Sequence record: LR756508.1
Direction: 5' to 3' (one strand)
Length of the DNA: 64,000 nucleotides
A program made the position numbers and the translations under genes. Below the pieces are notes generated by a model, which worked only from the letters and a program-made list of their open reading frames with translations, had not been told where the DNA came from and did not search any database. How positions within the stretch are numbered: the stretch's first letter is position 1; each line of letters starts with the position of its first letter. Positions 8,743-54,220 of this stretch are shown here, in pieces.

Positions 8743-9819
8743 ATGGGTGATAAACTTGAAAATGCAACTTTTCTTTGTGGAGATGCAGAGGACAAGTTGT
8801 CAGAGTTACAATCTAATTCTGTTCAAGTTTGTATTACATCTCCACCTTACTGGGGACTGCGAGATTATGGCGAAAGAGATCAACTTGGCTTAGAAGACTC
8901 TCCCCATGAATACGTTAAAAACTTAACTCAAGTATTTCGTGAAGTGAAGAGGGTACTACATCCATCAGGCACTTTCTGGCTTAATATCGGAGATAGCTAC
9001 AATGGAAGCGGTGGAACAGGCACCAAGCCGAATTTAAGACCAAACCAGAAAGAGCACGGGGCACCAGCAACAAGATTTGATGGGCTAAAACCAAAAGACA
9101 AGACGCTAGTTCCATCGAGAGTAGCCCTGGCCTTACAAGAGGATGGATGGTGGGTGAGGCAAGAAATAATCTTCGCCAAAGGCATTAGTTTCTGCGAAGA
9201 TTATAGTGGGACGTGTATGCCAGAGTCAGTATCTGACCGCTGTTCAACCTCTCACGAAAAGTTTTACCACCTGTCGAAATCTAAAAACTACTTTTATGAT
9301 ATAGATGCTGTAAGAGAGTCCTATCAAAGCAAAAAAAGAGATATTGATAGAGCACACGTAACAGGAAGAGGGAAGCAGGACTATTCAACGGCTTTCTTAG
9401 GCTCAGATCAAAGAGATAAAAGTGGGGGATATCCCTTCACAAATGGAGGCAGAAATTTAAGAAGCGTTTGGACTATAAACCCTTCGCAGTTCAAAGGTGC
9501 TCATTTTGCCGTGTTTCCTTTAGATCTTGTTGAACCGCCAGTAAAAGCTGGAAGTCCTTCTGGTGGCGTCTGCACCGAGTGCAAAATTCCCTACAGAAAA
9601 GTAGACGGCAAGTGGGCAAAAAGATGTGATTGCGAAACGGATGAGACAGAGCCTGCTACTATTTTAGATCCTTTCATGGGAGCAGGAACAACTGGAATTG
9701 CAGCCTTAAAACATGGAAGAAGGTTTGTCGGAATAGATATAAACGATGAATACATCGAAATGGCAAAAAACCGAATACGAAAACATGAAGAGGTTCCGTT
9801 AAGTCACGACTGGTGGTAG
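8743..9819 (+). CDS. Beta-class N4-C/N6-A DNA methyltransferase
   Basis: CITSPPYWGLRDY (motif IV), HFAVFPLDLV, ILDPFMGAGTTG (motif I). ATG 8743 is a more plausible start than 8680. Confidence 0.9.
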   Translation: MGDKLENATFLCGDAEDKLSELQSNSVQVCITSPPYWGLRDYGERDQLGLEDSPHEYVKNLTQVFREVKRVLHPSGTFWLNIGDSYNGSGGTGTKPNLRPNQKEHGAPATRFDGLKPKDKTLVPSRVALALQEDGWWVRQEIIFAKGISFCEDYSGTCMPESVSDRCSTSHEKFYHLSKSKNYFYDIDAVRESYQSKKRDIDRAHVTGRGKQDYSTAFLGSDQRDKSGGYPFTNGGRNLRSVWTINPSQFKGAHFAVFPLDLVEPPVKAGSPSGGVCTECKIPYRKVDGKWAKRCDCETDETEPATILDPFMGAGTTGIAALKHGRRFVGIDINDEYIEMAKNRIRKHEEVPLSHDWW

Positions 9820-9836
9820 AAACGAGATAAAGTGAA

Positions 9837-17345: not shown

Positions 17346-17421
17346 AGCGAATTTGACCGAACTTTTTAGTCAATTTTCTTACCTATTTCTGCATTTCTTC
17401 TCTTAATAATCAGTCTTCTGT

Positions 17422-19287
17422 ATGAAAACAAAGAAAATTAAAAATATTCCCGAATCAAAACTGAATCAGGACGGAGAAAAAGAATATTGCGTATACACCG
17501 ATTCCTGCCCCGGTTTTGAGCCTATAGTTGTTAAAAGTAAAGAAAGTGGGTTGATTGACGTAAGACTCATATCAGACCTTGAAAACCGTTGGCAGGAGTA
17601 TCTTGTTTGGAGCGATGAAGGTTTTGTAAGAATTAATAATTTTATTAAAAAACCGCTTCGAAAAAACCTCTTCACTGTCAGGACGCAAAGAGGTGTTGTT
17701 CATGTCACTGAGGACCATAGCCTAATCAAATCTTCGGGAGATCCAATAAAACCAAATAAAGTTGAAGTAGGAAACACGGAGCTTTTACACAAAAAAATCG
17801 GCAATTTTGAGCGGAAGACTGAATTTTCAAAAAAACGTGCTTGGTTTTTCGGATTTTTTACTGCAGTAGAAAATAGTAGATGCTCTAATTCCAAAGAAGA
17901 AAATAAAAAGTTAGATGAGGCTTTAAAACAAAAAATTAATGTATCAGCAGAAACCAAAAGGATAGTAGAGTCCGAAAGTTTCACAAAATCTCCTGTATAT
18001 CCAAGATCAGGTTTTGGAAGAGACTTTCCCTCTGGATCTGTAAATCTGTGTTATACAGAAGACAAAAAACTGAAAGTTCCGCCTCAAATTTTAAATGCCA
18101 AAAGAAGTGAAACTATCGAAGCATTTTTGGAAGGCTACAGTGATGGCGACGATCAGATTAATCGAAATTCTTCTAAAAGAAGGTACTGGTTTGATTCTCC
18201 CGTGTTAGCCCAAGGAATTAACCTTTTATTTAATAAATTAGATCAATTAATGGAGGTTGATTATCTAAGAAGTGATGAAAAAGAAAGTATTGGGTTAAGC
18301 AGCCAGGATTCTTGGAAAGAAGAATCAGAAAAAGTAGAGCAAATTGAAGAGTTTGAATACAAGGGAGATTATGTTTACGACTTGGAAACCGAAAACCATC
18401 ATTTTGCCTGTGGAGTAGGCTCCATTGTTGTCCATAACACCGACTCGGTGTTTTATCCAGCAGAGCCGATTGTTGAAAAGCAGATGCCGAATGTAGACAC
18501 CGAAGATGAAGAGGGTATGACCGATGCAATTTTAGAGATTGCAGATGAGGTCGAGGATTATCTTAACGCCTGCTATAACCATTTCGCTAGAGAATTAGCT
18601 CACATTCCTGAAGATAAAAAGCACTGGTTTGAAATTAAACAGGAGCTTGTAGCCAAGTCTGGCCTTTGGGTTCGGAAAAAAAGATATGCCCAGTGGATTA
18701 TCAACGACGAAGGTGATCCAACAGACGAGTTGGACGTGAAAGGGCTTGATATTATCCGCTCCGATTTCCCTACTGCCTTTCGAGAGCTTCTAGAAGATGT
18801 TATTGTTTCGATCCTTAAAGGCTCGGATAAAAAAGAAATAGACAAAAAGGTTCTCGATTTCCGAGAGAATCTTAAAAATTTGAATCTTGAGGACGTGGCG
18901 AGGCCAACTAAAGTAGGAGACCTTGAAGACTACCATACCGATGATTTTGGAAGAACTCAAAAAGGTACTCCCGCTCACTTTGCCGGAGCGTTAAATTACA
19001 ACGACTTGATCAGGCACTTTGGACTTGAAAAAGAAGTTTCTCCTATCAAAAGCGGATCAAAGATCAAGTGGGTTTATTTAAATAAAAACAATCTTGGCTT
19101 CGAGAAGATGGCTTTCAAAGGTCAAGGAAATCCTAAGAAGATAATAGAGTTTTTAAAAGACAATACTGACTTCGTAAAACTTTACGAAAAAAGCCTCAAG
19201 AGTAAAGTTGAAGCTGTTTATGAAGCTATGGACTGGAACTTTCCATCCGAAAACAAACGGCAGGCTCAGAAGTTTTTCAGCATGTGA
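17422..19287 (+). CDS. polB: Family B DNA polymerase, C-terminal part (motif C, thumb), intein-containing
   Basis: YCVYTD|intein|TDSVF gives YTDTDS after splicing; KKRYA, VKGLDIIRSD; C-terminal QAQKFFSM clamp-binding-like tail. Confidence 0.92.
   Translation: MKTKKIKNIPESKLNQDGEKEYCVYTDSCPGFEPIVVKSKESGLIDVRLISDLENRWQEYLVWSDEGFVRINNFIKKPLRKNLFTVRTQRGVVHVTEDHSLIKSSGDPIKPNKVEVGNTELLHKKIGNFERKTEFSKKRAWFFGFFTAVENSRCSNSKEENKKLDEALKQKINVSAETKRIVESESFTKSPVYPRSGFGRDFPSGSVNLCYTEDKKLKVPPQILNAKRSETIEAFLEGYSDGDDQINRNSSKRRYWFDSPVLAQGINLLFNKLDQLMEVDYLRSDEKESIGLSSQDSWKEESEKVEQIEEFEYKGDYVYDLETENHHFACGVGSIVVHNTDSVFYPAEPIVEKQMPNVDTEDEEGMTDAILEIADEVEDYLNACYNHFARELAHIPEDKKHWFEIKQELVAKSGLWVRKKRYAQWIINDEGDPTDELDVKGLDIIRSDFPTAFRELLEDVIVSILKGSDKKEIDKKVLDFRENLKNLNLEDVARPTKVGDLEDYHTDDFGRTQKGTPAHFAGALNYNDLIRHFGLEKEVSPIKSGSKIKWVYLNKNNLGFEKMAFKGQGNPKKIIEFLKDNTDFVKLYEKSLKSKVEAVYEAMDWNFPSENKRQAQKFFSM
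17503..18438 (+). mobile_element. Intein 2 in PolB motif C (312 aa, Ser1, His-Asn end, +1 Thr)
   Basis: YTD|SCPGFEPIVV...VTEDHSL...AFLEGYSDGD...VYDLETENHHF..IVVHN|TDS. Confidence 0.92.
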
Positions 19288-19404: not shown

Positions 19405-20193
19405 ATGGTTGATACAGTTGTCGAAGAACCTGAAGTAGAAAATGAAAATGAGACTGTCGAAAACGAACAAATTTCAAAAGACAGGCTCACATCTCATATT
19501 GATCGTTATTATCTTGGAGGAAATGTCGAGCACGTCAAGCTTCAAATCCAAGATGGCACTCTAAACTGCAATTTCATCTCAAATGATCAGAGCCTTGTAG
19601 GGAAGTTTGAGGTCGAAGACATGCCTCTCGAAGACTGCGAGCTTGGAATTTACGATACGGCAAAGCTTCGGAAGCTCATTAAAATCCTTGAAGACGAGAT
19701 TGACATTGAGGTCGAGTACGCTGCCGAAAAAGCCAAGGCCCTTCATATGAGAGATAACTTCAAGGAAGTTGATTTCCAGCTTGGAGAGCTTTCTATTATT
19801 CCAGATGCCCCATCTCTTAAGCAGATCCCTGACTTTGAAACTGTTGTAACGCTTGATAACCAGTTTATTTCCGATTTTATTGATGCTGAGAGGGCTTTGA
19901 AAGATTCTTCAACCTTTGCAGTTCAATCGGAAGGAAGTGACGTTGAAGTTATTCTTGGGTACTCTCAAAGAGGGAATACCAATAAGGTGTTCTTAAATCC
20001 TACTACCGAGCGCTTCGAGGAGATGGATCCGACAATGTTTGATTCGTCTGTGTTCTCCGAAATCCTTTCGGCAAATGACGATGCTGAAGAAATGAGTTGG
20101 GAAGTTTCTTCCCAAGGACTTTCACGAATTTCATTTTCTGGTGGCGACTTTGATCTCACGTATTACTTCGTCGCAAAGTCAGAAGCCGTGTAA
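19405..20193 (+). CDS. DNA polymerase sliding clamp (gp45/PCNA-like)
   Basis: 262 aa acidic protein between polB and the clamp loader; LGIYDTAKLRKLIKIL and C-terminal LTYYFVAK resemble phage clamps. Confidence 0.75.
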   Translation: MVDTVVEEPEVENENETVENEQISKDRLTSHIDRYYLGGNVEHVKLQIQDGTLNCNFISNDQSLVGKFEVEDMPLEDCELGIYDTAKLRKLIKILEDEIDIEVEYAAEKAKALHMRDNFKEVDFQLGELSIIPDAPSLKQIPDFETVVTLDNQFISDFIDAERALKDSSTFAVQSEGSDVEVILGYSQRGNTNKVFLNPTTERFEEMDPTMFDSSVFSEILSANDDAEEMSWEVSSQGLSRISFSGGDFDLTYYFVAKSEAV

Positions 20194-20234
20194 TTAAGTG
20201 TATTCTTATAGGAATAAAACCAAACACTACTTTT

Positions 20235-20666: not shown

Positions 20667-20677
20667 AATTAGATCAA

Positions 20678-22072
20678 ATGTCTGGATTCTTTGGAAAAGA
20701 CAGGGAGATGGAAATATGGGCAGAAAAATATCGTCCCGAGACGCTTGAAGACTATGTCGGAAATGATCATATTAAAGATAAAGTAGAGCGTTATATTGAG
20801 GAAGATGATATCCCTCATCTACTTTTTCATTCTAAAAAACCAGGTACAGGTAAATGCTTAGGTTATTCTGAAATGGTTGATGTAAAAATTGGAGCTGTTA
20901 ATTCCAATGAAAGAGAACTTAGACTTCCAGTAGGAAGACTTTTTGAGCTTCTTGGAATTGACAATAATAAATACGATAAGTTTCAAGAGGTTGGTTGGGA
21001 TGTTTCAATTAAAGATTCGGGTGGAGAGTATGTTAGTATAAACTCGCTTGTAAAAAAGAAAGGAAACGTTTTTTCTTATGAGTTTAAAGATGGCACGACT
21101 ATTACTTGTGATGAAAATCATCTCGTAAAAAACTGGAAGACTGGAGATTTCCAATGCATTTGTAATGTTCAGTTTGTCGAAACTGTTACAGGGAAAAAAG
21201 AAATTGTCGATAAGAAATTTGAGGGGTATAAAGATGTTTATGATTTTTCCTTGAATCATCCTCATGAATACGTGACCTCATCCGGAATTGTTTGTCATAA
21301 TACGTCACTGGCTAAAATTATTGTAAATAATATCGACTGCCAGTATATGTATATCAACGCATCTGATGAAAATAGCGTTGATACGATGAGAAATAAAATC
21401 AAGCAATATGCCAGTAATGTTGCTATTAACAACTTGAATGTCATAATTTTGGATGAGAGCGACATGCTTTCACCCCAATCACAGGCGGCACTCAGGCGAA
21501 TTATGGAAGATTTCGCTCAAACCACCCGCTTTATCCTCGCTTGCAACTTCGTGTCTAAGATAGTGGAGCCAGTAGTTTCGCGGACGCAGTCTTTTAAGGT
21601 TCTCCCCCCAAAAAAGTCTGAGGTAGCTAAAAAACTGGTAGGTATTTTACAAAATGAGGGAATTAAATTTGAAAAAAGTCAGGTTGGATTAATAGTAAAT
21701 CAGTATTATCCAGACATTCGGAAAGTATTTAACAATGCCCAGCAGAATACCATTGACGAAGAGCTTGTGGTGCATGAAGAAGACATGATTGAGTCTTCTT
21801 ATAAGTTTAAACTTCTTGAACTATTAAAAGATAGCTCAAAAAACCAAAACGATCTTTTCCAAGAAATTAGGGAGCTTACTGCAAGTGCTCCAATTGACTC
21901 ATACTCTGACGTGTATCGGTTCTTGTTCGATAAAGCCGACGAGTATGCCGAAGGGCATGTTGCTGAAGTCTACCTCCAGCTTGCCGAGTCTCTTTTCGAA
22001 GACTCAATGACAACTGATCCTGAAATTACTTTCTCTGCCTGCATCATTCAAATTATTGATATCATTCGTTAA
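20678..22072 (+). CDS. Clamp loader AAA+ subunit (gp44/RFC-small-like), intein-containing
   Basis: WAEKYRP, PGTGK|intein|TSLAK, INASDE, ILDESD, RFILACN, SRTQ. Confidence 0.92.
   Translation: MSGFFGKDREMEIWAEKYRPETLEDYVGNDHIKDKVERYIEEDDIPHLLFHSKKPGTGKCLGYSEMVDVKIGAVNSNERELRLPVGRLFELLGIDNNKYDKFQEVGWDVSIKDSGGEYVSINSLVKKKGNVFSYEFKDGTTITCDENHLVKNWKTGDFQCICNVQFVETVTGKKEIVDKKFEGYKDVYDFSLNHPHEYVTSSGIVCHNTSLAKIIVNNIDCQYMYINASDENSVDTMRNKIKQYASNVAINNLNVIILDESDMLSPQSQAALRRIMEDFAQTTRFILACNFVSKIVEPVVSRTQSFKVLPPKKSEVAKKLVGILQNEGIKFEKSQVGLIVNQYYPDIRKVFNNAQQNTIDEELVVHEEDMIESSYKFKLLELLKDSSKNQNDLFQEIRELTASAPIDSYSDVYRFLFDKADEYAEGHVAEVYLQLAESLFEDSMTTDPEITFSACIIQIIDIIR
20855..21301 (+). mobile_element. Mini-intein in the clamp-loader Walker A motif (149 aa)
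   Basis: GTGK|CLGYSEMV...TCDENH...VYDFSLNHPHEYVTSSGIVCHN|T. Confidence 0.92.
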
Positions 22073-22079: not shown

Positions 22080-23423
22080 CGTTCAAGAATGCCTCCGTCT
22101 TGGGAGGTGAATTGAACCACTTTAAGCTTCAAAATATATGCATAAGGTAAGAAAATTAAATATCGAAGATCCCGAGCTTGAAGAGCAGCTTAACGAGCTT
22201 GCGTCAGCTTCTGCAGACCTGTGGAACACGATTTGCACCTGGCACTGGCGGACGGTCGACCGCCAGGGCCACTGGCTCAGTCAGGGTGCGATGATGAGGT
22301 GGCACTGCAATGGCCATCCGTACTTTCATAGCCAGACGGCCCAGGCAGTCGCTGACCAGTTCTACAGCTCACTCAAAAGCTGGAGAGCCAGAGATCGAAA
22401 AGGCAAGCCACCTTTGGATCGTGAGAAAGAGTGGAACAAGATCTGCTGGAATTTCCAAGCCATCAAGCTTCGAAGCGATGGCCAACTAAGATTGTCGAAT
22501 GGACTTGGTAACGATCCAGTTCTGATTGACTGGCCTGTCAATGAAGAACCAGTATTTGTTGAGATCGGCTGGAATCAACGCTTTGAAGTCAGAGCTACAT
22601 ATGAAACCAAAACTGAAGATCGGACAACTGGAAACAAAATAGCTGGCGTCGACTTGGGCGAAAAGCACTTGGCAGCAGTTGCGACTGGTAGCGATAGCTT
22701 TCTTTTGAATGGAGGAAGGCTACGAGCAATAAGAAAATACCAAAACCAGACGAAAGCACGGCTACAAGAAAAAATCAGTAGAAAAGAGAGAGGATCTAGA
22801 CGCTGGAAAAGGCTTGTTAAAAGTAAGAACCAGCAGTTGGAGCATTTGGATAACAAGATCACGGACATCCTGCACAAGCTTTCCCGAAAACTGATCGACA
22901 TGTGCCTCGAACGCGATGTGTCGACAGTGGTGATCGGGAAGTTGAAGGGAATCCGAGATCATATCGATCACGGTCGATATCTAAACCAAAGGCTCCACCA
23001 GTGGGCGCATGGGACTTTTGGCGACTACATCGAGTATAAAGCGAAAGATAATGGCATTGAGGTCAAGTATGTTGAAGAAGCCTATACGTCCCAGACTTGT
23101 CCTCGATGTGGAGCGGCAGATGAGTCTCATAAGAATGGACGTAACTTTGAGTGCTTGAATTGCAGTTATGAAGCCCACAGAGATTCGGTTGGAGCCTGGA
23201 ACATAAGGAAGAAGTATGTCAGCGAGGATGCGGATCGAAGCGTATCTAGCTGTCTACCTGGAGCGATGGCGTCTCCCTCGGGAGTGCGGCACGAGCCGCA
23301 CCTCCCGTGTAGCTCGCGGAGCAAAGATCCCTGCTTGCCAAATCCTTGTTAGGAACGCGAGAAAGATTGTTTTCACTGTAATTTGAACAAGAATCCCCTC
23401 GCTTTAGCGAGGAGAGACGTCAA
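22080..23423 (+). mobile_element. IS200/IS605-family (IS1341-type, tnpB only) insertion sequence
   Basis: Left hairpin AAGAATGCCTCCGTCTTGGGAGG near 22086; right end AAGAATCCCCTCGCTTTAGCGAGGAGAGACGTCAA ends at 23423; higher GC than flanks; left boundary approximate. Confidence 0.8.
22138..23352 (+). CDS. tnpB: TnpB RNA-guided endonuclease
   Basis: AGVDLGEKHLA, LHKLSRKLI, YTSQTCPRCG, FECLNC, HRDSVGAWNI. Confidence 0.92.
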   Translation: MHKVRKLNIEDPELEEQLNELASASADLWNTICTWHWRTVDRQGHWLSQGAMMRWHCNGHPYFHSQTAQAVADQFYSSLKSWRARDRKGKPPLDREKEWNKICWNFQAIKLRSDGQLRLSNGLGNDPVLIDWPVNEEPVFVEIGWNQRFEVRATYETKTEDRTTGNKIAGVDLGEKHLAAVATGSDSFLLNGGRLRAIRKYQNQTKARLQEKISRKERGSRRWKRLVKSKNQQLEHLDNKITDILHKLSRKLIDMCLERDVSTVVIGKLKGIRDHIDHGRYLNQRLHQWAHGTFGDYIEYKAKDNGIEVKYVEEAYTSQTCPRCGAADESHKNGRNFECLNCSYEAHRDSVGAWNIRKKYVSEDADRSVSSCLPGAMASPSGVRHEPHLPCSSRSKDPCLPNPC

Positions 23424-23443
23424 TATGGCGATGTGGAAAAGAG
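23230..23443 (+). ncRNA. Predicted TnpB omega/reRNA (tnpB 3' end to IS right end, plus about 20 nt guide)
   Basis: Inferred from the known TnpB architecture; 5' boundary is a guess. Confidence 0.45.
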
Positions 23444-24369
23444 ATGATAAGCCTTCTACAGTTTTTGACCTTTTTACAGGCGAAGAAAGCGACGAGTACC
23501 AACGTCAATCTTTTACCCAATGGTCAAGAGATGGACAAAATTTTATTCCGACAAGACAAACCCAAAACCAACTTCCAGCGGGATATTATGAGATTGGCCA
23601 CAACCAAAAGCACGGCGTTTTCTTAGAAAAGGTTCCCGTAAACACTGAGGAGCTTGTCCGTTTTCCCGACAGCACATTTGATAACGTAATTCAAGAAATT
23701 AAAACGTTTTGGGACAGGGAGGAAATTTTCCGAGAGTACGGCATACCGTTCAAAAGAGGAATTCTCCTATATGGGGAGCCAGGAACTGGCAAGAGTTGTC
23801 TTGTCAAGCTTATAATGAGCGACGTAATTACGAGAGGTGGGATCGTTTTGAATTTTGAGCACCCTGAAACGTTTAAAATGGGAGTTCGGGCACTGCGAGA
23901 GGTTCATCCCGATAAACCCATTGTTGTCGTTATGGAAGACGTTGATTCAATTCTTGAAAACACTTCTAGAACCGAAGTTTTAAATATTTTGGATGGAGTG
24001 ACAAAAACAGACAAAATTGTCTTCCTGGCAACAACGAATTATCCCGAAAAACTCGAAGAAAGGATTACAAACAGGCCCTCTCGGTTTGATAAAAGGTACG
24101 AAATTGATATGCTCGGGGAGGAGTCAAGAAAGATGTATTTTGATTTTCTTTTCGATAAAGTGCCTGAGGAGGAGGTAGAAAAAGAAGGATATGACGTCGA
24201 GAAGTGGGCAAAAGATACGAAAGAACTTACAATTTCACATCTCAATGAGCTTTTCGTGGCAGTTGTGATTCTAGGGGACGATTACGATGAAACTCTTAAT
24301 ACTTTAAAAGAAATGGACAATAAACTATCTACCACTCCGAAGGGAAATGGAGTTGGGTTTTCACAGTAA
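23425..24369 (+). CDS. AAA+ ATPase (BCS1-like); start corrected to lie outside the IS
   Basis: ILLYGEPGTGKS, VMEDVD, LATTNYPEKL, RPSRFD. The track start at 23383 falls inside the IS right end. Confidence 0.88.
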   Translation: MAMWKRDDKPSTVFDLFTGEESDEYQRQSFTQWSRDGQNFIPTRQTQNQLPAGYYEIGHNQKHGVFLEKVPVNTEELVRFPDSTFDNVIQEIKTFWDREEIFREYGIPFKRGILLYGEPGTGKSCLVKLIMSDVITRGGIVLNFEHPETFKMGVRALREVHPDKPIVVVMEDVDSILENTSRTEVLNILDGVTKTDKIVFLATTNYPEKLEERITNRPSRFDKRYEIDMLGEESRKMYFDFLFDKVPEEEVEKEGYDVEKWAKDTKELTISHLNELFVAVVILGDDYDETLNTLKEMDNKLSTTPKGNGVGFSQ

Positions 24370-28335: not shown

Positions 28336-29157
28336 ATGTCTAAAAGCAAAAGGACTTCTGATAAATTTTATACGAAAAAAGAAGTAGCCAGGGACCTAAT
28401 CTCTGAGGTTCCACTTGAAAAGTTTGAAAATATAATTGAACCTTCAGCGGGAACTGGTTCTTTTTCCTCTAAAATCGACGGCTGCATAGCCATCGACACC
28501 GATCCCCAGTCTAAAGAGATAAAAAAACAAGATTTTTTTGACTTTGAGTTTCATGGAGATCCTTCTAACACAATAGTGCTCGGCAACCCACCTTTTGGTA
28601 GGCAGGGCAGTAAAGCCCTCTCATTTATAAGAAAAGCTTCAGAAATCGCCGATGCCATAGGATTTATTTTGCCTAAGTCTTTTAAAAAAGATTCAATGAA
28701 AAGGAAGGTTCCCGACCATTTCCACGTCCAAAAAGAAATTGACCTTCCAGAAAAAAGTTTTGTTTACAGAGGCGAAGACCATGAGGTTCCTGTCGTGTTT
28801 CAACTCTGGATCAGAGAGGACGTGCCGAGGTTGAAGTATGGAGAGAACGAGCCCCTCGGCTATACCTTTTTAAAAACCCCCAAATATGCAGATTTCACAG
28901 TTCGAAGGGTTGGGGTGCATGCTGGTGAGGCCAGCCTTACTTCTCTCGATAAATCCCCACAAAGCCACTATTTTTTGCGCTTAGACAAACGAATAAAGTC
29001 AAAGAGGGCAAAAATTGTCAAGAGTCTTAACCAAACCGAGTTTCCATCCGCAGAAGATACTTCTGGCCCAAATTCAATTTCAAAAGGTGAGTTTATCTGC
29101 AAGTTAAATCCTATTATTGAGGAAATGTCTGATCTAAGTGAACTTAGATTTTGGTAA
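28336..29157 (+). CDS. N6-adenine DNA methyltransferase (motif I before motif IV)
   Basis: DKFYTK, IIEPSAGTGSF, VLGNPPFG, FILPKSF. Confidence 0.88.
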   Translation: MSKSKRTSDKFYTKKEVARDLISEVPLEKFENIIEPSAGTGSFSSKIDGCIAIDTDPQSKEIKKQDFFDFEFHGDPSNTIVLGNPPFGRQGSKALSFIRKASEIADAIGFILPKSFKKDSMKRKVPDHFHVQKEIDLPEKSFVYRGEDHEVPVVFQLWIREDVPRLKYGENEPLGYTFLKTPKYADFTVRRVGVHAGEASLTSLDKSPQSHYFLRLDKRIKSKRAKIVKSLNQTEFPSAEDTSGPNSISKGEFICKLNPIIEEMSDLSELRFW

Positions 29158-37289: not shown

Positions 37290-37336
37290 AATGCCATTTC
37301 AATTCTCCACACTCTGAATACAGTTTTCGTTTTCTG

Positions 37337-38626
37337 ATGCAAAAAATTCTTCAGGGTAATTCAAAACAAATACTGAAGGATATTGAGAAAGAGTCCGTCC
37401 ACTCCGTCGTAACTGATCCTCCTTATGAGCTAGGGTTTATGGATCGAGATTGGGATGAAAGCGGAATTGCCTTCGATGAAAACTTTTGGATACAGGCGAA
37501 AAGAGTTTTGAAACCTGGTGGTTACGTGCTATCTTTCGGTGGATCACGAACTCACCATAGACTTATGGTAGCTATCGAAAATGCTGGCTTCGAGATCAAA
37601 GGGTGCTGTATGTGGTTATATAATACAGGATTTCCGAAATCTCACGACGTTTCCCGTGGAATAGACAAAGAATTGGATATGGAGGATAAACGGGAGGTTA
37701 TAGCCACTGAAGAAAGGTATAACGAGCCTTCGGGCCTCGTGAAAGCTGGTCGGGGACCTGAGGCAAGAGAAAAAATTACTCGCGAGATTACAGCTCCCGC
37801 ATCTCAAGAGGCAAAAAAATGGGAAGACTGGGGAACCGCCTTGAAGCCTGCCTACGAGCCAATCGTTATGGCACGAAAACCACTTTCTGAAGACACTATA
37901 GCCGAGAATATTTTAAAGCACTCGGTGGGTGCTATTAATATTGATGGCTGCAGGTTGCCCACCTCCGACGATACGCAGCGGAAAGTTGGAGACAGGCAGA
38001 CTGGTACTTACGATGAAGTCGGTGGAATGTTTGAGAAAGGAAAATACGAAGGAATGAAAGCTGGTGGGCATGAAGACGGAAGATGGCCTACTAACCTGAT
38101 GTTAAACAATAGGGCTACGGTGCTTTTAGACAGACAAGGAGGAAAAACAAAAAGTAAGGTAAGAGAACCGACGGGTGGTAGCCAGTCTTCCAACCGAGTG
38201 GCTATGGGAGAAATAACAACTCCAGATACATCAAAACGGGGGTATAACGACTCAGGTGGAATATCAAGATACTTCTACTCCCCTAAGCCGCACTCGAAGG
38301 AGAAAAATATCGGGTGTGAAGACAACTATCACCCAACTGTGAAGCCAATCGAGTTTATAAGCTATTTAATTCGTCTGGTTACGCCAGAAGACGGAAAAGT
38401 AATGGACCCCTTTCTTGGAAGTGGAACAGGGGCAATAGCTGCACTCTTAGAGGACAAAGATTTTATTGGAATTGAACTAAATGAAGAAAAAGCTGAATTG
38501 TCCAAGAAGCGAGTTGAACATGTAAAAAATAATTTAGAAGATGTAAAAAGACAAATTTTTGGAGACCCAAGTAATGAAATAACAAATAAAGAAAAGTCTA
38601 CAATTGATCATGAATTCTGGGGATAG
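37337..38626 (+). CDS. Beta-class DNA methyltransferase B
   Basis: VVTDPPYELG, HPTVKP, VMDPFLGSGTG; ATG 37337 preferred as start. Confidence 0.92.
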   Translation: MQKILQGNSKQILKDIEKESVHSVVTDPPYELGFMDRDWDESGIAFDENFWIQAKRVLKPGGYVLSFGGSRTHHRLMVAIENAGFEIKGCCMWLYNTGFPKSHDVSRGIDKELDMEDKREVIATEERYNEPSGLVKAGRGPEAREKITREITAPASQEAKKWEDWGTALKPAYEPIVMARKPLSEDTIAENILKHSVGAINIDGCRLPTSDDTQRKVGDRQTGTYDEVGGMFEKGKYEGMKAGGHEDGRWPTNLMLNNRATVLLDRQGGKTKSKVREPTGGSQSSNRVAMGEITTPDTSKRGYNDSGGISRYFYSPKPHSKEKNIGCEDNYHPTVKPIEFISYLIRLVTPEDGKVMDPFLGSGTGAIAALLEDKDFIGIELNEEKAELSKKRVEHVKNNLEDVKRQIFGDPSNEITNKEKSTIDHEFWG

Positions 38627-39602
38627 GGTGAAGTTTACCTCAAAGAAAATTGAAGACCACCTTGTCCATACTTGCATCACTGAGTCCAACGAAACTTCAG
38701 TGGAAACATGGAAAAAAGTTAAAAAATCTTTAAAACCTGGAGGTCACCTGGCAGCGGTTTCCGATAAAAAGACTCATTATAAAGTCACCGCTTCTATCGA
38801 GGACGCTGGTTTCGAGGTTCGTGATACAATTGTTTTTCTTATTCAGTCGGACAGTTTTGAAAGGTTTGAAACTTCCTATAAAGCAGTAACCCTGGCTCGA
38901 AAACCTTTGTCTGAAGATAACACCGCTCAAAACACATTAAAACACGGAACATCTGCCATTAATATTGGCGAGTGTAGAATAGAGTATAATGGTCCGGTTA
39001 AAAGAAGCTTTCGAAAATCTGATGGCACGGGATCAAATGATGCTACCTTCTGGCCTGAAGGAATCCGAAGTTCGAATAGACCTGCCACTCCTACCGAAGA
39101 AGGGAGGTGGCCTACAAATCTTTTGTTGGATTATAAAACCTGTCCGAAGCTTGACTATCAAAGTGGCGTATTATCGAGTGGTGAAAATGCAGTGAGAACC
39201 CAAAACGCATCCGATTCTTATCATGGAGGAGATACTGGCGCGTTTTCTGAAGGTGCAGTAATGACCACTTATGGGGATTCTGGTGGAGCTTCCAGGTATT
39301 TTAATACCCCGAAAGACTTCAATGAAGAGTTTGAAAATAGCGAGTTGACCGGCCTCATGTGCTTTCTTATAAGACTCCTTACTCCTGAAGAAGGATTGAT
39401 ATTTGATCCTTTTTTGTCAACTGGCTCGATTGGAGTAGCTGCGGTTCTCGAAGAAAAAATGTTTATCGGAAAAGGCACTTCTCGTACCGATATTGAGTAT
39501 GCCGCTCAAAATGCTGGCCACCTAAAAGAAAAGTACATGTCCAAAGAAAAGAAAGAAAGCGACTTGGAAGACACAATCAAGCACAACTTCTGGGAAAAAT
39601 AG
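38604..39602 (+). CDS. Degenerate beta-class MTase paralog C (catalytic DPPY lost)
   Basis: HTCITESNE replaces HSVVTDPPY; LKPGGHL, LARKPLSE, AINIG, EGRWPTNL kept; IFDPFLSTGS; no HPTVKP. Confidence 0.75.
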   Translation: MIMNSGDRVKFTSKKIEDHLVHTCITESNETSVETWKKVKKSLKPGGHLAAVSDKKTHYKVTASIEDAGFEVRDTIVFLIQSDSFERFETSYKAVTLARKPLSEDNTAQNTLKHGTSAINIGECRIEYNGPVKRSFRKSDGTGSNDATFWPEGIRSSNRPATPTEEGRWPTNLLLDYKTCPKLDYQSGVLSSGENAVRTQNASDSYHGGDTGAFSEGAVMTTYGDSGGASRYFNTPKDFNEEFENSELTGLMCFLIRLLTPEEGLIFDPFLSTGSIGVAAVLEEKMFIGKGTSRTDIEYAAQNAGHLKEKYMSKEKKESDLEDTIKHNFWEK

Positions 39603-39608: not shown

Positions 39609-40763
39609 ATGAACTCAAAAACGTCTCTACATCTTGCCGATTCCAAAAAGAAGCTATTGAAATTCGACCAGAATAGTTTTCACTCCTGCGTGTGTGATCC
39701 GCCCTATGAGCTTGGAATCATGAACAAAAGCTGGGACGAAAGCGGCATCGCTTTTGATAGCGAATATTGGAGTAGAGTTTATCGGGTTTTAAAACCTGGC
39801 GCTCACCTACTTGCTTTTGGTGGTAACAGAACTCATCACAGGCTTATAGTTGCAATTGAAGACGCTGGTTTTGAAATTAGAGATTGCCTCATGTGGGTTT
39901 ATTCGAATGGTCTCAGCAATTCTCATGACGTTTCAAAAGCTATTGATAAGCACCACGGAAAAAGCGAAGAGCGTGAAGTTGTAGACACTTACACGAAAAC
40001 CGAGTCGTATACAAAAGAATATTCTGGAGAGGCAAGGGGCGAAACCCCCTGGGGGCAGGCAGTGATTGAAGTTACAGCTCCCGCTACCCAGGACGCAGAG
40101 AAGTGGAATGGATATGGAACCAAGCTGAAACCAGCTTACGAGCCGATTGTTCTTGCCCGAAAACCGATCTCAGAAAAAAATATAGCGAAAAATGTATTGA
40201 GGCATTCTGCTGGAGCCATAAACATTGGCGACTGCAAAATTGGAAACGAGAGGCTTCCTGCAGTTGATCGTGGCAATTCGAAAAATACTGATTTCCAAAG
40301 CGGTGGCGATACGCCAAAGCGTGAAGGGAGGTGGCCTACAAACTTTATTATAGATGAGGAGGTAGCAGGCGAGTTGGACTGGCAGAGTAGAGACCGAAAT
40401 GCTTCTCGCTTTTTCTATTCGCCTAAAGCTCAACAGGACGAAAGAAACATTGGTACTGCAGAAAATAACCATTCTACTGTAAAGCCTATTGAGCTTATGG
40501 CGTATCTTGTTAGGCTTGTTACTCCTCCTGAAGGTGAAGTTTTAGACCCATTTATGGGAAGTGGGAGCACTGGAGTAGCTGCGATTTTGGAAAACGTGGA
40601 CTTCACGGGCATTGAACTCCGAGAGGAAAGTTTTGAAATAGCAGAAGACCGAATTCAGTATACAAAAAGAAATTACGTAAAAGTGAGAGATCTTATTTTT
40701 GATGATCCTCATAACGAAGAAACAAACAAAGAAAAGTCTGCCATGAATCACGGGTTCTGGTAA
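39609..40763 (+). CDS. Beta-class DNA methyltransferase D
   Basis: VCDPPYELG, HSTVKP, VLDPFMGSGSTG. Confidence 0.92.
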   Translation: MNSKTSLHLADSKKKLLKFDQNSFHSCVCDPPYELGIMNKSWDESGIAFDSEYWSRVYRVLKPGAHLLAFGGNRTHHRLIVAIEDAGFEIRDCLMWVYSNGLSNSHDVSKAIDKHHGKSEEREVVDTYTKTESYTKEYSGEARGETPWGQAVIEVTAPATQDAEKWNGYGTKLKPAYEPIVLARKPISEKNIAKNVLRHSAGAINIGDCKIGNERLPAVDRGNSKNTDFQSGGDTPKREGRWPTNFIIDEEVAGELDWQSRDRNASRFFYSPKAQQDERNIGTAENNHSTVKPIELMAYLVRLVTPPEGEVLDPFMGSGSTGVAAILENVDFTGIELREESFEIAEDRIQYTKRNYVKVRDLIFDDPHNEETNKEKSAMNHGFW

Positions 40764-45421: not shown

Positions 45422-45703
45422 TTGAGCGAGAACATGGAGAAAAATGGTAAAAATTCCTGGAAAGTATACATCGTTCGGTGCTCCGATGATAGCTTGTATA
45501 CGGGAGTAACAAAGGATTTAGATAGGCGAGTGAATGAACACAACTCTGGCAGTGGAGCTAAATATACCAGATCTCGCACTCCCGTTAAACTCGTCTGGTC
45601 AGAAAGTAAATCATCTCGGTCCAAAGCTCAGAAGCGAGAGCACGAAATTAAGTCCCTTTCAAGAGACAAAAAACTTCAATTAATAGATGTCAGATCTGGA
45701 TAA
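45422..45703 (+). CDS. GIY-YIG nuclease (UPF0213-like)
   Basis: VYIVRCSDDSLYTGVTKDLDRRVNEHNSGSGAKYTRSR. Confidence 0.9.
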   Translation: MSENMEKNGKNSWKVYIVRCSDDSLYTGVTKDLDRRVNEHNSGSGAKYTRSRTPVKLVWSESKSSRSKAQKREHEIKSLSRDKKLQLIDVRSG

Positions 45704-46742
45704 TTTTTTCGATACTGAAGAGCCTGCGTCTAAAAGCGAAAAAGATAATAAAAAAGACACCCGGAACAGGAAAATATCTTGGAGCCAATTTAAGACGTAT
45801 GAAGAATGTCCTAAGAAGTGGCAGTTAAAGTATAAAGAAGGACATCATATTCCTTCCTCTTCGATTCATACAATTTTCGGTGCTGCAGTTCATGAGGCGA
45901 TACAAAGTTATCTTAACGTTTTATATCATAAGTCCGTGGGCGAAGCAGAAAACCTTGATCTTCGTTCAATTCTAATCGAAAAAATGAAGGAAGAATATAA
46001 AAAAGCTCGGGATGAGTTCGAAGAAAGCGAGTACATTGACGGAGACGAACTGCCTGCTTCTCAGATCGAGATGAAAAAGTTTTTGATGGATGGGGAGAAG
46101 ATGATCAAATCTTTCCTGGCTAATAGAACTAATTATTTTAATACGAAGACAACTGATCTAGTTGGAATAGAGCTCCAGGTAAATCATTCTCTTAAAGAAA
46201 ACGTCGATTATGTTGGATATTTGGACGTGGTTTTAAAAGAGCGTGGAAAAGAAAAGTATAAAGTAATTGACATAAAAACAAGCAAGGAAGGCTGGGATAA
46301 ATGGAAGAAAAAAGATAAAATGCGTGTTAACCAAGTCGTTTCTTATAAATCCTACTATTCGGAGGTTCTCGGCACCGACCCATCAAACATTGACGTCGAG
46401 TACATAATACTAAAGAGGATCTTAAAAGAAAACAAATATCATAAGCAAAATAGGATTCAAACATTTTCTCCTCCAAGTGGAAGCATCACTCAAAGCAAAG
46501 TCCGAGAGCAAATCAACGAGTTTGTTGAAGACTGTTATAATGAAGACGGAAGTAGAAAAGATAAAGAATATGATCCTGATCCTGAAAAATTTACCTGCTG
46601 CTGGTGTGAGTTTTCTAAGCAGTTTGATGGAAAATATCCTGTTTGTGATCAAGGTGGTGAAAGATTTGGTGTTGATGATAATGAAAAATATCCATCTGGT
46701 ATGAAAGGTTATATTGACAACAAATACGTAGAAGATAATTAA
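45687..46742 (+). CDS. PD-(D/E)xK RecB/Cas4-like exonuclease 1
   Basis: ECPKKW, GYLDVV, IDIKTS, CCWC..C terminal Cys cluster. Confidence 0.82.
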   Translation: MSDLDNFFDTEEPASKSEKDNKKDTRNRKISWSQFKTYEECPKKWQLKYKEGHHIPSSSIHTIFGAAVHEAIQSYLNVLYHKSVGEAENLDLRSILIEKMKEEYKKARDEFEESEYIDGDELPASQIEMKKFLMDGEKMIKSFLANRTNYFNTKTTDLVGIELQVNHSLKENVDYVGYLDVVLKERGKEKYKVIDIKTSKEGWDKWKKKDKMRVNQVVSYKSYYSEVLGTDPSNIDVEYIILKRILKENKYHKQNRIQTFSPPSGSITQSKVREQINEFVEDCYNEDGSRKDKEYDPDPEKFTCCWCEFSKQFDGKYPVCDQGGERFGVDDNEKYPSGMKGYIDNKYVEDN

Positions 46743-47864: not shown

Positions 47865-47881
47865 AAGATAGATAAAATTTA

Positions 47882-48184: not shown

Positions 48185-48190
48185 AGTGTT

Positions 48191-51862: not shown

Positions 51863-51868
51863 AGGGTT

Positions 51869-54220
51869 ATGATTGATCTTAAAACTGGCGATTGTCGGGA
51901 TATATTGAGCTCTTATCCCGAGGCTACCTTCCACTCCTGCGTTACAGATCCTCCTTATGAACTCGGTTTTATGGGGAAGAACTGGGATCAGAGCGGCGTT
52001 GCTTTCGATGTTGATACCTGGTCTGAAGTTTACCGAGTTTTGAAGCCTGGAGCACATCTTCTGGCTTTCTCGGGAACCCGAACTCATCACAGAATGATGG
52101 TTGCTATCGAGGACGCTGGATTTGAGCTAAGAGATACTCTCATGTGGGTTTCAGGATGTATCACTCCAGACACAGAAATTCTTACCAGTGAAGGATGGAA
52201 AAAACACAATCAACTTAAAATTGGAGAAAATGTAGTTTGTTATGACAAAGACACAGACTCTTATCAATACGGACCGATTCAGCAAAAATTGGAAAAACAT
52301 AACCAATCTACAGCCTTCCGAATTCGAGGAGATCGTACAGACCAAATCGTCAGTCCAGAACATTGCGTCATCGTTGAACGAGATGGAAATTTTGAATTTG
52401 AAAGAGCGTGGAGACTGGCACGGAAACAGGAAATATCCGTACCCATATTGGAAGATTTGCGAGCAGTGCGAAAAGATCTTTCCAGCTATGAGCAAAGAGC
52501 AGGCGAAACGCAACAAAACCTGCAACCCGAAATGCGCTCACGAACAAATATCAAAGAAGCGAACTGGAAACCTGATTCCTATGGAAAAGAGGGACGGCAC
52601 GGTTCAACTCAAATGCGAGGAATGCAGGAAAGAATTTTACAAATGGAGGAACAACATCTCGGAAGGAGAAAGGGGAGACTTTTGTTCCAAAAGTTGTTAC
52701 TTCAAGTGGATGGAGAAAAGCGAAGAGTTAACCGAACACATGCGAGAGATAAGGTTGGAAGGAAGACGAAGCGAAGAAAAAATGGAAAAGCTGAGAGAAA
52801 GGATGACAGGTTCTACAAATCCAAGTTGGAAGGGGGGTGTAACTTACAAAAATACAAAAGGAAACTACAAAAACACAATACTTGTTCAATGTCCCGAAGA
52901 GTTCAGCGAGATGGCAAGAAAGGCTGGCTATGTTCTCGAACATCGGCTCAAAGTCGCCCAAAAAATCGGTCGACCACTCAAGAGCGAAGAAGTGGTTCAT
53001 CACATCGATCAAGACCCGCAGAACAACAAAATCGAAAACCTAATGCTATTTCGAAACGACAAAGACCACAAACTCCACGAACATCACGGAGAACCTGCAC
53101 CGATTTGGCAACCATCGAGCCATTAGATTATGACGGAATGGTATGGTGTGTAAAAGTCCCAACGGGTGCGTTTGTCGCCCGAAGAAACGGAAAAATGTTT
53201 GTAACTGGAAACAGTGGATTCCCGAAGTCTTATAGCATAGACAAAGATATTGACAAAGAACTTGGCGTAGAAGATAAAAGAGAAGTCGTAGAAGAAAAAG
53301 AGTGGAGGGTCGGTGGAGGAAATGTCTTAAACTTAAGAGAAGGAGAAGCAGAAACGAAAACGCAGCAGATAAGTAGGCCAGCTTCAAAAGAGGCTAGAAA
53401 GTGGAACGAATGGACTACGTCTTTAAAACCTGCTTACGAACCCATTACTTTAGCTAGAAAACCGATTTCTGAGCAAAACGTCGCTAAAAACGTTCTGAAG
53501 CATGGAACTGGAGCAGTAAACGTGAAAGAAACGCGAATCGGAGACGAAAAGAGAGTTAACCCTCCAGCGAAGAACAAAGGGGGTGGAAATAGCCTTCACA
53601 TGAGCAAAGAAGGAATGCCCGACGACGCAGAGGGCAGGGCAACTGAGGGCAGGTGGCCTACTAACCTTATTTTGGATGAGCGGGCTTCTGTTTTATTAGA
53701 TAACCAGAGTGGAGACTTACATCCCCGTGGAAACACCACTCCCACGAAAAGAAAGAAAAGTGAAGGAATATGGGGAAACCACTCGCCTTCTTATGGAGTC
53801 GGCAAGTCTGGTAAGGTCGATTCGGGGAGCGAGGGGGGAGCGTCTAAATTTTTCTACTGCCCGAAAGTCCGTGGCTCAGAGAGAAACCTCGGTTGCGAAG
53901 ACGGAGAAAACGATCACCCAACGGTTAAGCCAATTGAGCTTATGGCTTATCTAATTCGGCTCGTTACTCCCGAAGACGGAAAAACGCTCGATCCGTTTGT
54001 TGGAAGTGGATCAACTGTTTTAGCTTCGATTTTAGAACAGAAAGACGCTACTGGAATTGATTTAGATGAGGAAAACATTCAACTTACAAGAAAGCGGGCT
54101 GACTACTTTCAAAAAAACTTCCAAGAAGTTTACGATTTTTTTTGCGACGATCCTGGAAACGAAATAACTCGACAGGAGAAATCAACAATTGATCATAGTT
54201 TTTGGAATCTTAGAAATTAG
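51869..54220 (+). CDS. Beta-class DNA methyltransferase E (intein-containing)
   Basis: CVTDPPYELGFMG, HPTVKP, TLDPFVGSGST. Confidence 0.92.
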   Translation: MIDLKTGDCRDILSSYPEATFHSCVTDPPYELGFMGKNWDQSGVAFDVDTWSEVYRVLKPGAHLLAFSGTRTHHRMMVAIEDAGFELRDTLMWVSGCITPDTEILTSEGWKKHNQLKIGENVVCYDKDTDSYQYGPIQQKLEKHNQSTAFRIRGDRTDQIVSPEHCVIVERDGNFEFERAWRLARKQEISVPILEDLRAVRKDLSSYEQRAGETQQNLQPEMRSRTNIKEANWKPDSYGKEGRHGSTQMRGMQERILQMEEQHLGRRKGRLLFQKLLLQVDGEKRRVNRTHARDKVGRKTKRRKNGKAERKDDRFYKSKLEGGCNLQKYKRKLQKHNTCSMSRRVQRDGKKGWLCSRTSAQSRPKNRSTTQERRSGSSHRSRPAEQQNRKPNAISKRQRPQTPRTSRRTCTDLATIEPLDYDGMVWCVKVPTGAFVARRNGKMFVTGNSGFPKSYSIDKDIDKELGVEDKREVVEEKEWRVGGGNVLNLREGEAETKTQQISRPASKEARKWNEWTTSLKPAYEPITLARKPISEQNVAKNVLKHGTGAVNVKETRIGDEKRVNPPAKNKGGGNSLHMSKEGMPDDAEGRATEGRWPTNLILDERASVLLDNQSGDLHPRGNTTPTKRKKSEGIWGNHSPSYGVGKSGKVDSGSEGGASKFFYCPKVRGSERNLGCEDGENDHPTVKPIELMAYLIRLVTPEDGKTLDPFVGSGSTVLASILEQKDATGIDLDEENIQLTRKRADYFQKNFQEVYDFFCDDPGNEITRQEKSTIDHSFWNLRN
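52157..53212 (+). mobile_element. Intein in MTase E (352 aa) carrying an out-of-frame HNH gene
   Basis: WVSG|CITPDTEILTSEGW...SPEH...VWCVKVPTGAFVARRNGKMFVTGN|SGFPK. Confidence 0.9.
52383..53126 (+). CDS. HNH homing endonuclease with Zn ribbons, nested in the +1 frame inside the intein
   Basis: CEQC, CNPKC, CEEC, FCSKSC, NPSWKGG, YVLEHR, VVHHIDQDPQNNKIENL. The frame is open from 52242; ATG 52383 is the likely start. Confidence 0.88.
   Translation: MEILNLKERGDWHGNRKYPYPYWKICEQCEKIFPAMSKEQAKRNKTCNPKCAHEQISKKRTGNLIPMEKRDGTVQLKCEECRKEFYKWRNNISEGERGDFCSKSCYFKWMEKSEELTEHMREIRLEGRRSEEKMEKLRERMTGSTNPSWKGGVTYKNTKGNYKNTILVQCPEEFSEMARKAGYVLEHRLKVAQKIGRPLKSEEVVHHIDQDPQNNKIENLMLFRNDKDHKLHEHHGEPAPIWQPSSH

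Follow-up and report, generated by a model that had tools for sequence, protein, structure and literature searches.

Why do seven DNA methyltransferase (MTase) genes of one uncultured 484-kb phage, not all of them of the same class, finish in nearly the same short aromatic peptide, and does this peptide connect the enzymes to the replication machinery? The question arose from the C-termini encoded in a 64,000-nucleotide stretch of record LR756508.1 (hereafter the window, whose coordinates are used unless stated otherwise). The genes under consideration are listed below.

8680..9819 (+), MTase F, a beta-class PF01555 enzyme; the public gene call starts at 8743 (358 aa), and the tail ..EEVPLSHDWW occupies the last ~10 codons (about 9787-9816)
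17422..19287 (+), PolB-C, the C-terminal ORF of a family-B DNA polymerase, ending ..QAQKFFSM (19261-19284), a probable clamp-binding motif
19405..20193 (+), sliding clamp with a predicted two-domain PCNA/gp45-type fold, the proposed docking partner
20678..22072 (+), clamp-loader subunit (AAA+/RFC-like), N-terminus MSGFFG
23383..24369 (+), second AAA+ protein (Pfam AAA, E = 5e-15), a possible further clamp-loader subunit by position only, separated from the first by a TnpB-like gene
28336..29157 (+), MTase G, gamma-like with NPPF at residue 84, ending ..DLSELRFW within a 12-residue terminal add-on, EEMSDLSELRFW (29119-29154)
35436..37289 (+), MTase A, a PF01555 paralog with a large intein-like insert, lacking a ~150-residue segment that B, D and E have; tail ..STIEHGFWSE (37257-37286)
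37286..38626 (+), MTase B, a PF01555 paralog; tail ..KSTIDHEFWG (38594-38623)
38604..39602 (+), paralog C, PF01555-like but probably inactive, since it lacks the DPPY motif and has a degenerate motif I; tail ..DTIKHNFWEK (39570-39599)
39609..40763 (+), MTase D, a predicted CcrM/M.BceJIV-like beta-class N6-adenine MTase fold; ends ..KSAMNHGFW, with a predicted disordered tail at residues 367-384 (40707-40760)
45687..46742 (+), PD-(D/E)XK-type exonuclease, starting MSDLDNFF, N-terminus MSDLDNFFDTEE
51869..54220 (+), MTase E, a PF01555 paralog with an intein-like insert at the same site as A; tail ..KSTIDHSFWNLRN (54179-54217)

Aromatic C-termini on the methyltransferases

The observation made in the first-pass annotation holds: every terminus it reported, on the MTases as well as on PolB-C, the clamp loader and the nuclease, is present in the sequence. 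The shared ending is also more than chance. In a crude call of 637 genes over the whole public record, [FW]W lies within the last 7 residues of 12 genes, against 3.2 expected from composition, and seven of these 12 are among the 10 MTase-like genes, against 5 of 627 others (Fisher p = 1e-11). Counting independent lineages instead, 3 of 6 MTase lineages against 5 of 627 other genes still gives p = 2.6e-5. Three other MTase-like genes of the same genome have no such tail (window 31601-35368, G2 at 29187-30020 and record 232764-237503).

The relationships among the tailed enzymes nevertheless differ from those first proposed. A to E are paralogs, 26-57% identical to A, so their shared tail is one inherited feature. 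F, initially taken as unrelated, belongs to the same Pfam family (PF01555, E = 6.8e-45) although it is only 26% identical, and only G represents a different class; it gave no Pfam hit and matched phrog_799 'DNA methyltransferase' (E = 1e-15). The claim of persistence across different MTase classes was thus overstated, because six of the seven genes are one Pfam family and five are paralogs; the real strength lies in three independent gains plus the same motif on non-MTase enzymes. Against the PF01555 profile, A, B, D, E and F score 86-154 bits over a cut-off of 26.7 and show the DPPY/SPPY and DPFxGSG motifs, whereas C scores 38.9 bits (E = 1.2e-9) but lacks DPPY, as had been noted.

A portable, predicted disordered peptide

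The tail lies beyond the catalytic fold. Foldseek matched the AlphaFold2 (AF2) model of D (mean pLDDT 80) to solved beta-class MTases (CcrM, M.BceJIV, MboIIA, RsrI) with E = 2e-15 to 4e-12 and probability 1.0, the top hits being CcrM and M.BceJIV (E = 2e-15; PDB 6pbd, 9c3u), which share the PF01555 motifs DPPY and FxGSG with D. The sequence homologs in the PDB end at D residue ~350 of 384, where the extension begins, and none has the HxFW tail. In the model, pLDDT falls from 94 (residues 351-360) to 63, 37 and 31 in the subsequent blocks, and residues 367-384 are all below 50, although this could partly reflect the thin alignment there, as only about 25 of 122 rows carry the tail. Packing of the tail into the MTase fold had been set beforehand as a refuting condition, and it is not seen in the AF2 monomer model.

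Comparison with homologs indicates that the tail was added independently in three MTase lineages. Of 120 D homologs, 23 form a clade ending ..DPSNxxTxEQTEVNDHxFW, while others at 45-52% identity lack it. Of the 120 listed F homologs, 18 (F's own public gene call included) end H-x-[FW]-W, most as (E/D)VPxNHxFW, and the rest, more distant, do not. For G, the 82%-identical homolog ends ..DLSQPDFW, but most of the 32-41% homologs, including every full-length alignment at 37-41%, stop about 12 residues earlier or end differently, with no FW. Altogether we counted 31 distinct D-type and 18 distinct F-type tails, with W as the very last residue in 45 of the 56 tailed proteins. The tail was absent from the 76 copies examined in bacterial or archaeal genomes, and the other 424 GenBank phage records with a D homolog, mostly mycobacteriophages without their own clamp of this type, align only to about residue 349-357.

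The motif is not confined to MTases. In loci of marine relatives around related clamps (36-40% identity), two families are encoded immediately downstream of the clamp gene: a 324-aa family resembling PLP-dependent enzymes, 7 of 7 ending ..VKHDFF or ..VKHGFF, and a 182-aa CxxCxxCC family, 5 of 5 ending ..KQTIKHGFF or ..KQTIKHEFF. The four PF01555 MTases in those loci end ..EHDFWQ, ..EKFWG (two copies) and ..QWEKFM.

The predicted sliding clamp and its neighborhood

ORF 19405-20193 gave no hit in Pfam, PHROGs, NCBIfam or PDB sequences and belongs to a divergent family known only from metagenomes. Its assignment as a clamp is confirmed by the predicted fold. The AF2 model (pLDDT 87.5, pTM 0.83) shows a repeated H/E pattern consistent with two topologically repeated domains, and Foldseek against the PDB recovered yeast, human and archaeal PCNA (E = 3e-13, TM ~0.7), the top 50 matches being all PCNA (TM 0.62-0.80). 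An RFC-like AAA+ gene follows it here and in relatives; in the window this gene hits Pfam AAA and DNA_pol3_delta2.

The motifs reported on the polymerase, loader and nuclease are conserved in orthologs. Of 70 PolB in loci with related clamps, 67 end in an aromatic pair (..ERFF, ..GKFFAFG or ..NQFFSFG), and syntenic relatives end ..EFFQF. In the syntenic contigs L190, L193 and L194/L195, the gene order is PolB, clamp (41-43% identity), RFC-like loader, MTases and PDDEXK nuclease, although in L190, which starts at its contig's end, only the MTases and the nuclease are in view. All 6 of 6 MTases in these contigs end HxFW. The L194/L195 loader starts MPQFFETEE, and in all three syntenic loci residues 1-60 of the loader align at 46-47% identity. 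The nuclease matches phrog_69 and phrog_1218 'exonuclease', and its orthologs start MSNKFFQTQE, MNDFFESQEE and MNNKFFDTQE. Every tailed MTase whose context could be read sits in this gene order, but co-occurrence with the clamp was read in only a handful of contigs (the window, L193, L194/L195, L007, L049/L072 and L077); clamp homologs lie next to tailed MTases in L193, L195, L007, L049/L072 and L077, whereas for L081, L190 and L191 the clamp lay outside the visible DNA.

Proposed docking to the clamp and alternative explanations

The explanation that we favor, with moderate confidence, is that the C-terminal H-x-F-[FW] peptide is a portable short linear docking motif at the end of a flexible linker, whose most likely receptor is the phage-encoded PCNA-like clamp. 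In this view, the clamp would also receive the FF motifs of the polymerase (C-terminus), the loader (N-terminus) and the nuclease (N-terminus), and clamps left on freshly copied DNA would concentrate the MTase set, including the probably inactive paralog C, on nascent DNA, so that modification follows the fork. That C keeps the tail would mean that the tail is selected independently of catalysis. Our data establish that the tail is terminal and conserved, lies outside the solved fold and is predicted to be disordered, was gained independently by three MTase lineages, is carried by unrelated enzymes of phages with the same clamp family, and is absent from the copies of the MTase family examined in cellular genomes and from all GenBank phage hits; in contrast, binding to the clamp, including in the hydrophobic pocket between its two domains, and the benefit of faster protection of new DNA are inferences. 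The interpretation in the first-pass annotation, recruitment of the MTases to the replisome through the clamp, is therefore partly supported, and its proposal that nascent DNA is protected before host restriction acts is pure inference.

Known systems provide precedents. As with the PIP-box and clamp-interacting peptides of PCNA and gp45 clients, this is a short peptide at a protein terminus, ending in two aromatic residues after a flexible linker and found on the polymerase and several DNA enzymes of a genome encoding a predicted PCNA-fold clamp. However, it does not fit the canonical pattern of a glutamine, a hydrophobic residue three positions later and an aromatic pair three positions after that. 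The MTase tails read (T/V)(I/N)(D/K)HxF[FW], with no glutamine, an invariant histidine two positions before the aromatic pair, a last residue Trp that is usually the very C-terminus, and the hydrophobic residue four positions before the first aromatic, one further than in a canonical PIP box (as first noted) or in the PolB tails (..TLERFF, ..LNQFF), which do fit the Phi-x-x-FF part. The MTase tails may therefore use another site or another receptor.

Eukaryotic DNMT1 is likewise recruited to newly replicated DNA through a clamp-binding peptide that binds PCNA (PMC9690074), but it is a C5-cytosine maintenance enzyme of unrelated architecture, whereas here a whole set of beta- and gamma-class phage enzymes carries the peptide and the clamp is encoded by the virus. 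Phage T4 alpha-glucosyltransferase co-purifies with the phage's own clamp gp45, which is proposed to couple modification to replication (PMC13216743, citing Sommer 2004); this enzyme is a glucosyltransferase acting on hmC for which no terminal motif is named there, and the T4 study found that expression level, not clamp affinity, mainly sets the modification share. The plasmid MTases M.EcoGIX and M.BceJIII depend for activity on association with the replication machinery and co-purify with host DNA polymerase I, with the clamp named by the authors as a possible intermediary (PMC7736820), but they are specific for single-stranded DNA and no terminal peptide was described. We found no report of such coupling for phage MTases. 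If the tails dock on the clamp, this phage group couples DNA modification to the replication fork, closing the interval in which new DNA is unmodified and open to restriction. This would extend the principle known from DNMT1-PCNA and T4 alpha-glucosyltransferase-gp45 to phage MTases and perhaps to hypermodification enzymes, would explain why a probably inactive paralog is kept, and would provide a sequence signature (H-x-F-[FW] at the C-terminus) for clients of an uncharacterized clamp family that is abundant in metagenomes but absent from cultured phages.

Among the alternatives, the one that survives best, although unlikely, is that the tail docks on a shared partner other than the clamp, such as another replisome or DNA-bound hub (single-strand-binding protein, helicase or the polymerase itself) or a compartment/targeting receptor. 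The H-x-F-[FW] class (Phi at -4) differs from the PolB class (Phi at -3, FF), the receptor is inferred rather than identified by our data, and the carriers include enzymes not known to act on DNA, i.e., a PLP-type fold, a CxxCxxCC domain and a GT2 glycosyltransferase. However, terminal aromatic-pair peptides are the established way of binding PCNA/gp45-type clamps (PMC9690074), the non-MTase carriers lie directly next to the clamp gene, there is a continuum of endings (..ERFF, ..NQFF, ..HDFF, ..HDFW, ..EKFW) across clients in the same phages, and a DnaE-like polymerase fragment of the same genome ends ..NQFFW.

It is less likely still that the tail is part of the enzyme's own working, as an autoinhibitory or DNA-contacting arm or a dimer contact. 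Beta-class MTases such as CcrM and M.BceJIV work as dimers, CcrM has a C-terminal DNA-binding extension, and an AF2 monomer model cannot show inter-subunit contacts. Yet the same peptide sits on a gamma-like MTase and on PLP-type and CxxCxxCC proteins with unrelated folds, is kept on paralog C, is predicted unpacked and is absent from hundreds of close, presumably functional homologs. A C-terminal degron or protection tag setting the lifetime of DNA-modifying enzymes during infection is about equally improbable; the tail is terminal, exposed and predicted disordered, and its Trp is mostly the last residue, as expected for signals read from the free C-terminus, but no such degron class resembling it is known to us, and this reading explains neither the likeness to the polymerase tail nor the linkage to phages that encode this clamp. 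Paralogy among A to E plus chance endings of a short motif in F and G is very unlikely given the lineage-level enrichment and the conservation of the F and G tails in their closest homologs but not in more distant ones.

A broader and more tentative possibility is a general wiring rule, whereby DNA-modifying enzymes of phages and other mobile elements are plugged into whichever sliding clamp is in use by short, swappable terminal peptides, which would make replication-coupled 'epigenetic' protection widespread and predictable from sequence. In phages that bring their own PCNA-like clamp, the plug would be H-x-F-[FW] or Phi-x-x-FF, which sits on MTases of three lineages, on a possible TGT/DpdA-like enzyme, and on a GT2 glycosyltransferase, a PLP-type enzyme and a CxxCxxCC protein. 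In bacterial, prophage and small-phage copies of the same MTase family, the C-terminal extension often carries instead a glutamine-x-x-Leu/Met-Phe peptide of the kind that binds the bacterial beta clamp, suggesting that the idea may be general; such a peptide was seen in 12 of 74 genome copies and in 16 of 150 cluster representatives.

Methyltransferase tails in LR756508.1

The window begins at base 248001 of LR756508.1, an unannotated 484,177-bp uncultured phage assembly to which its bases 17000-24000 are 100% identical, and nearly all of its genes lie on the + strand. All termini listed in the first-pass annotation are present in the sequence, and the observation of a shared aromatic tail on the methyltransferases (MTases) is confirmed. 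Pfam places the MTases A to E in a single family, PF01555 (beta-class N6/N4 DNA methylases), together with F, which that annotation had treated as unrelated, with E-values from 1e-9 to 7e-45. A to E are paralogs, 26-57% identical to A, whereas F is only 26% identical and can be aligned to A-E by BLAST only around motif I. Paralog C lacks the DPPY motif. G has no Pfam hit, but matches phage DNA-methyltransferase PHROGs. We first considered that G and the next ORF (G2) were two halves of one split MTase, which would have made the G tail internal. This reading was rejected because G has its own NPPF motif at residue 84 and full-length homologs of the same size, and G is thus a separate gamma-like MTase. 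In a crude call of 637 genes, made on the public record read in pieces that were never joined, [FW]W lies within the last 7 residues of 12 genes, against 3.2 expected, and seven of these 12 are among the 10 MTase-like genes (Fisher p = 1e-11 by gene and 2.6e-5 by lineage).

Solved relatives (M1.HpyAVI, M.BceJIV, CcrM, MboIIA, RsrI, and TTHA0409) align only up to residue ~350 of the 384 residues of MTase D. An AlphaFold2 model of D, built from 122 sequences, has a confident core that matches M.BceJIV and CcrM, but its pLDDT falls from 94 (residues 351-360) to 63, 37, and 31, and residues 367-384 are all below 50. Although only about 25 alignment rows carry the tail, it is conserved yet predicted to be unpacked, which is the usual signature of a docking peptide.

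Among the 120 best homologs of D, 23 form a clade that ends ..DPSNxxT(E/D)EQTEVNDHxFW at a fixed distance from motif I, whereas others, equally close in the catalytic body, stop after the last helix or carry other endings. Among the 120 listed homologs of F, 18 end H-x-[FW]-W, most as ..(E/D)VPxNHxFW or ..HDWW, with roughly 40-74% identity to F (one of the 18, P0151, is F's own public gene call), and the rest end otherwise. The 82%-identical homolog of G ends ..DLSQPDFW, while its homologs that align over the full length at 37-41% identity, some on giant-virus MAG contigs, stop about 12 residues earlier, and the more distant ones end differently. Three MTase lineages therefore acquired a terminal FW peptide independently.

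None of the 76 copies of the family examined in bacterial and archaeal species genomes, drawn from the 79 best of 450 confirmed loci, has this tail or any terminal aromatic pair. Likewise, the 424 other GenBank phage records with a D homolog, mostly mycobacteriophages and Arthrobacter phages, align only to about residue 349-357. Tailed homologs come from large metagenomic phage contigs. In two of these loci, L193 and L194/L195, the gene order is that of the window, i.e., PolB, a 260- to 262-aa clamp (41-43% identical to ORF 19405-20193), an RFC-like loader, two PF01555 MTases, and a PD-(D/E)XK nuclease. A third, L190, starts at the end of its contig and shows the two MTases and the nuclease only. 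All six MTases in these three contigs end HxFW.

The predicted clamp and its putative clients

The ORF at 19405-20193 has no sequence-level annotation, as searches against Pfam, PHROGs, NCBIfam, PDB sequences, and, by tblastn, 50,697 GenBank phage records returned no hit, and only the fold identified it. It is predicted with a pLDDT of 87.5 to fold into a two-domain clamp whose 50 best PDB matches are all PCNA. The family is nonetheless abundant in marine viral contigs, with more than 544 loci in IMG/VR. In 80 such loci (L001-L080), PolB ends in an aromatic pair in 67 of 70 cases (..TLERFF, ..LGKFFAFG, or ..LNQFFSFG), and the ..QAQKFFSM ending of the window is the same motif. The N-terminal FF motifs pointed out in the first-pass annotation are also conserved in the syntenic relatives: the loader of L194/L195 starts MPQFFETEE, and the nucleases start MSNKFFQTQE, MNDFFESQEE, and MNNKFFDTQE. 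Elsewhere in the genome, further proteins end in aromatic clusters, the first of them belonging to a second polymerase type and the other two being candidate further clamp clients with PolB-like tails:
Record 47361-49085 (L082): 574-aa DnaE-like fragment of bacterial-type DNA polymerase III alpha (NTPase and finger domains), ending ..NRNQFFW
Record 100321-101031: 236-aa protein of unknown family, ending ..SQKFFG
Record 370633-370899: 88-aa protein of unknown family, ending ..TKFFDFGS

The strongest evidence comes from portability, since several non-MTase families in the 80 clamp loci also end in aromatic pairs. A 324-aa protein resembling PLP-dependent enzymes ends ..VKHDFF or ..VKHGFF in 7 of 7 cases, and a 182-aa CxxCxxCC protein ends ..KQTIKH(G/E)FF, almost the MTase tail, in 5 of 5. 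These two families lie directly downstream of the clamp gene. A 394-aa family ends ..FNQFFE or a close variant in 31 of 31 cases. We suspected that this family is a DpdA/TGT-like DNA transglycosylase, but Pfam, PDB, and PHROGs searches gave nothing useful and NCBIfam gave only weak hits to DpdA and TgtA (E ~1e-3, far below the cut-offs), which leaves this identity as a hint. A GT2 glycosyltransferase ends ..QNKFYDTI in 9 of 10 cases, and the four PF01555 MTases found in those loci end ..EHDFWQ, ..EKFWG (two copies), and ..QWEKFM. The peptide thus rides on unrelated folds, in phages that share this clamp family, next to the clamp gene.

Putative tethering of methyltransferases to newly replicated DNA

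The best explanation, which we hold with moderate confidence, is a clamp-docking peptide that would tether DNA-modifying enzymes to newly replicated DNA. The first-pass interpretation, that the tails recruit the MTases to the replisome for protection of nascent DNA before host restriction acts, is partly supported and remains the best available. Our analysis establishes the terminal position, conservation, independent acquisition, and portability of the peptide, whereas the identity of its receptor, physical binding to the clamp, and the benefit against restriction are inferred. The motif does not follow the canonical PIP spacing; it has an invariant His and no Gln, and its hydrophobic residue lies one position further out. 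We therefore refer to it as PIP-like in proposed function and not as a PIP box. Three MTase-like genes of the genome lack the tail, so in this view tethering is not universal. Near G lie two MTase-like ORFs with other termini:
29187-30020: G2, MTase-like, begins right at its NPPY motif and so lacks the usual N-terminal SAM-binding part; ends ..KKDWYDSL
31601-35368: 1255-aa neighbor with an Eco57I-type MTase domain near residue 955 and no aromatic tail

Docking to another shared receptor is a possible but less likely alternative. An intramolecular or dimer role is unlikely, and a turnover tag only slightly more so. Chance plus paralogy is rejected on the enrichment statistics and the conservation of the tails in orthologs.

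Association of DNA-modifying enzymes with sliding clamps is already known. A clamp review lists DNMT1 as a PCNA client and gives no bacterial or phage counterpart (PMC9690074). T4 alpha-glucosyltransferase, but not the beta enzyme, copurifies with gp45 (PMC13216743). The plasmid MTases M.EcoGIX and M.BceJIII associate with Pol I, and the clamp has been suggested as a go-between (PMC7736820). What would be new here is the placement of a putative clamp-binding peptide on phage MTases, as no report of a phage or bacterial MTase with such a peptide was found in the literature searched, although this absence is weak evidence given the poor coverage of subscription journals.

Recurrent peptides in untailed relatives and other features of the locus

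Many untailed relatives of the MTase (homologs P0032-P0117 and others, and loci L111-L189) end in other recurrent short peptides (..QNPMGL, ..NQFFG, ..LNKFFE, or ..QxxLF), several of which look like bacterial beta-clamp-binding motifs. In particular, their C-terminal extension often contains a glutamine/glutamate-x-x-Leu/Met-Phe peptide, e.g., ..QPDLF.., ..QPSLF.., ..QQSLF.., or a terminal ..QNRLF. It occurs in 12 of 74 dereplicated genome copies and in 16 of the 150 best 50%-identity cluster representatives from a profile search; in a further 8 of those 150, the tail is HxFW. Its rate is 0.4-0.8 per 100 residues in the extensions of the D-type homologs and the genome copies, against 0.005-0.009 in the protein bodies. 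This resembles the bacterial beta-clamp-binding peptide, but the search pattern ([QE]xx[LM]F) was itself derived from the consensus of that peptide, and the resemblance is a lead rather than a test.

Two of the tailed MTases and the polymerase carry intein-like sequences:
35436-37289: MTase A, insert of about 310 aa
51869-54220: MTase E, insert of about 420 aa
11363-14416: first ORF of the family-B DNA polymerase (PolB-N), with a Hint-type insert
17422-19287: second PolB ORF, 3 kb apart from the first, beginning with an Intein_splicing match (residues 59-339) before the polymerase resumes
The inserts of A and E occupy the same site of the catalytic domain, start with a Cys-Leu/Ile-Ser/Thr-x-Asp-Thr block, and end ..GN before Ser, which looks like an intein. 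A has a weak LAGLIDADG_3 hit, and its insert is 20% identical to the Hint insert in PolB-N but has no PDB sequence hit. A also lacks a ~150-residue segment that B, D, and E have. The arrangement of PolB suggests one complete intein plus a split intein. Relatives have a single ~830- to 930-aa PolB.

A family of ~250- to 285-aa paralogs starting MKLK/MRFK..LL has at least 18 BLAST-detectable members in the genome; in the window, members lie at 7039, 7886, 14475, 15330, 49435, and 51011 and, by their N-terminal sequence, also at 9837, 16545, and 50272. Its only family match is phrog_12810, of unknown function. The members flank MTases F and E and lie between the two PolB ORFs, and they may be mobile. 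Two further genes lie among the polymerase and clamp-loader-like genes:
16091-16486: dCMP/cytidine deaminase gene, between the two PolB ORFs
22138-23352: TnpB/Cas12f-like gene (OrfB_IS605 plus the TNB domain), between the two AAA+ clamp-loader-like genes
The genome has two more copies of this TnpB/Cas12f-like gene at 82-83% identity and about seven distant ones.
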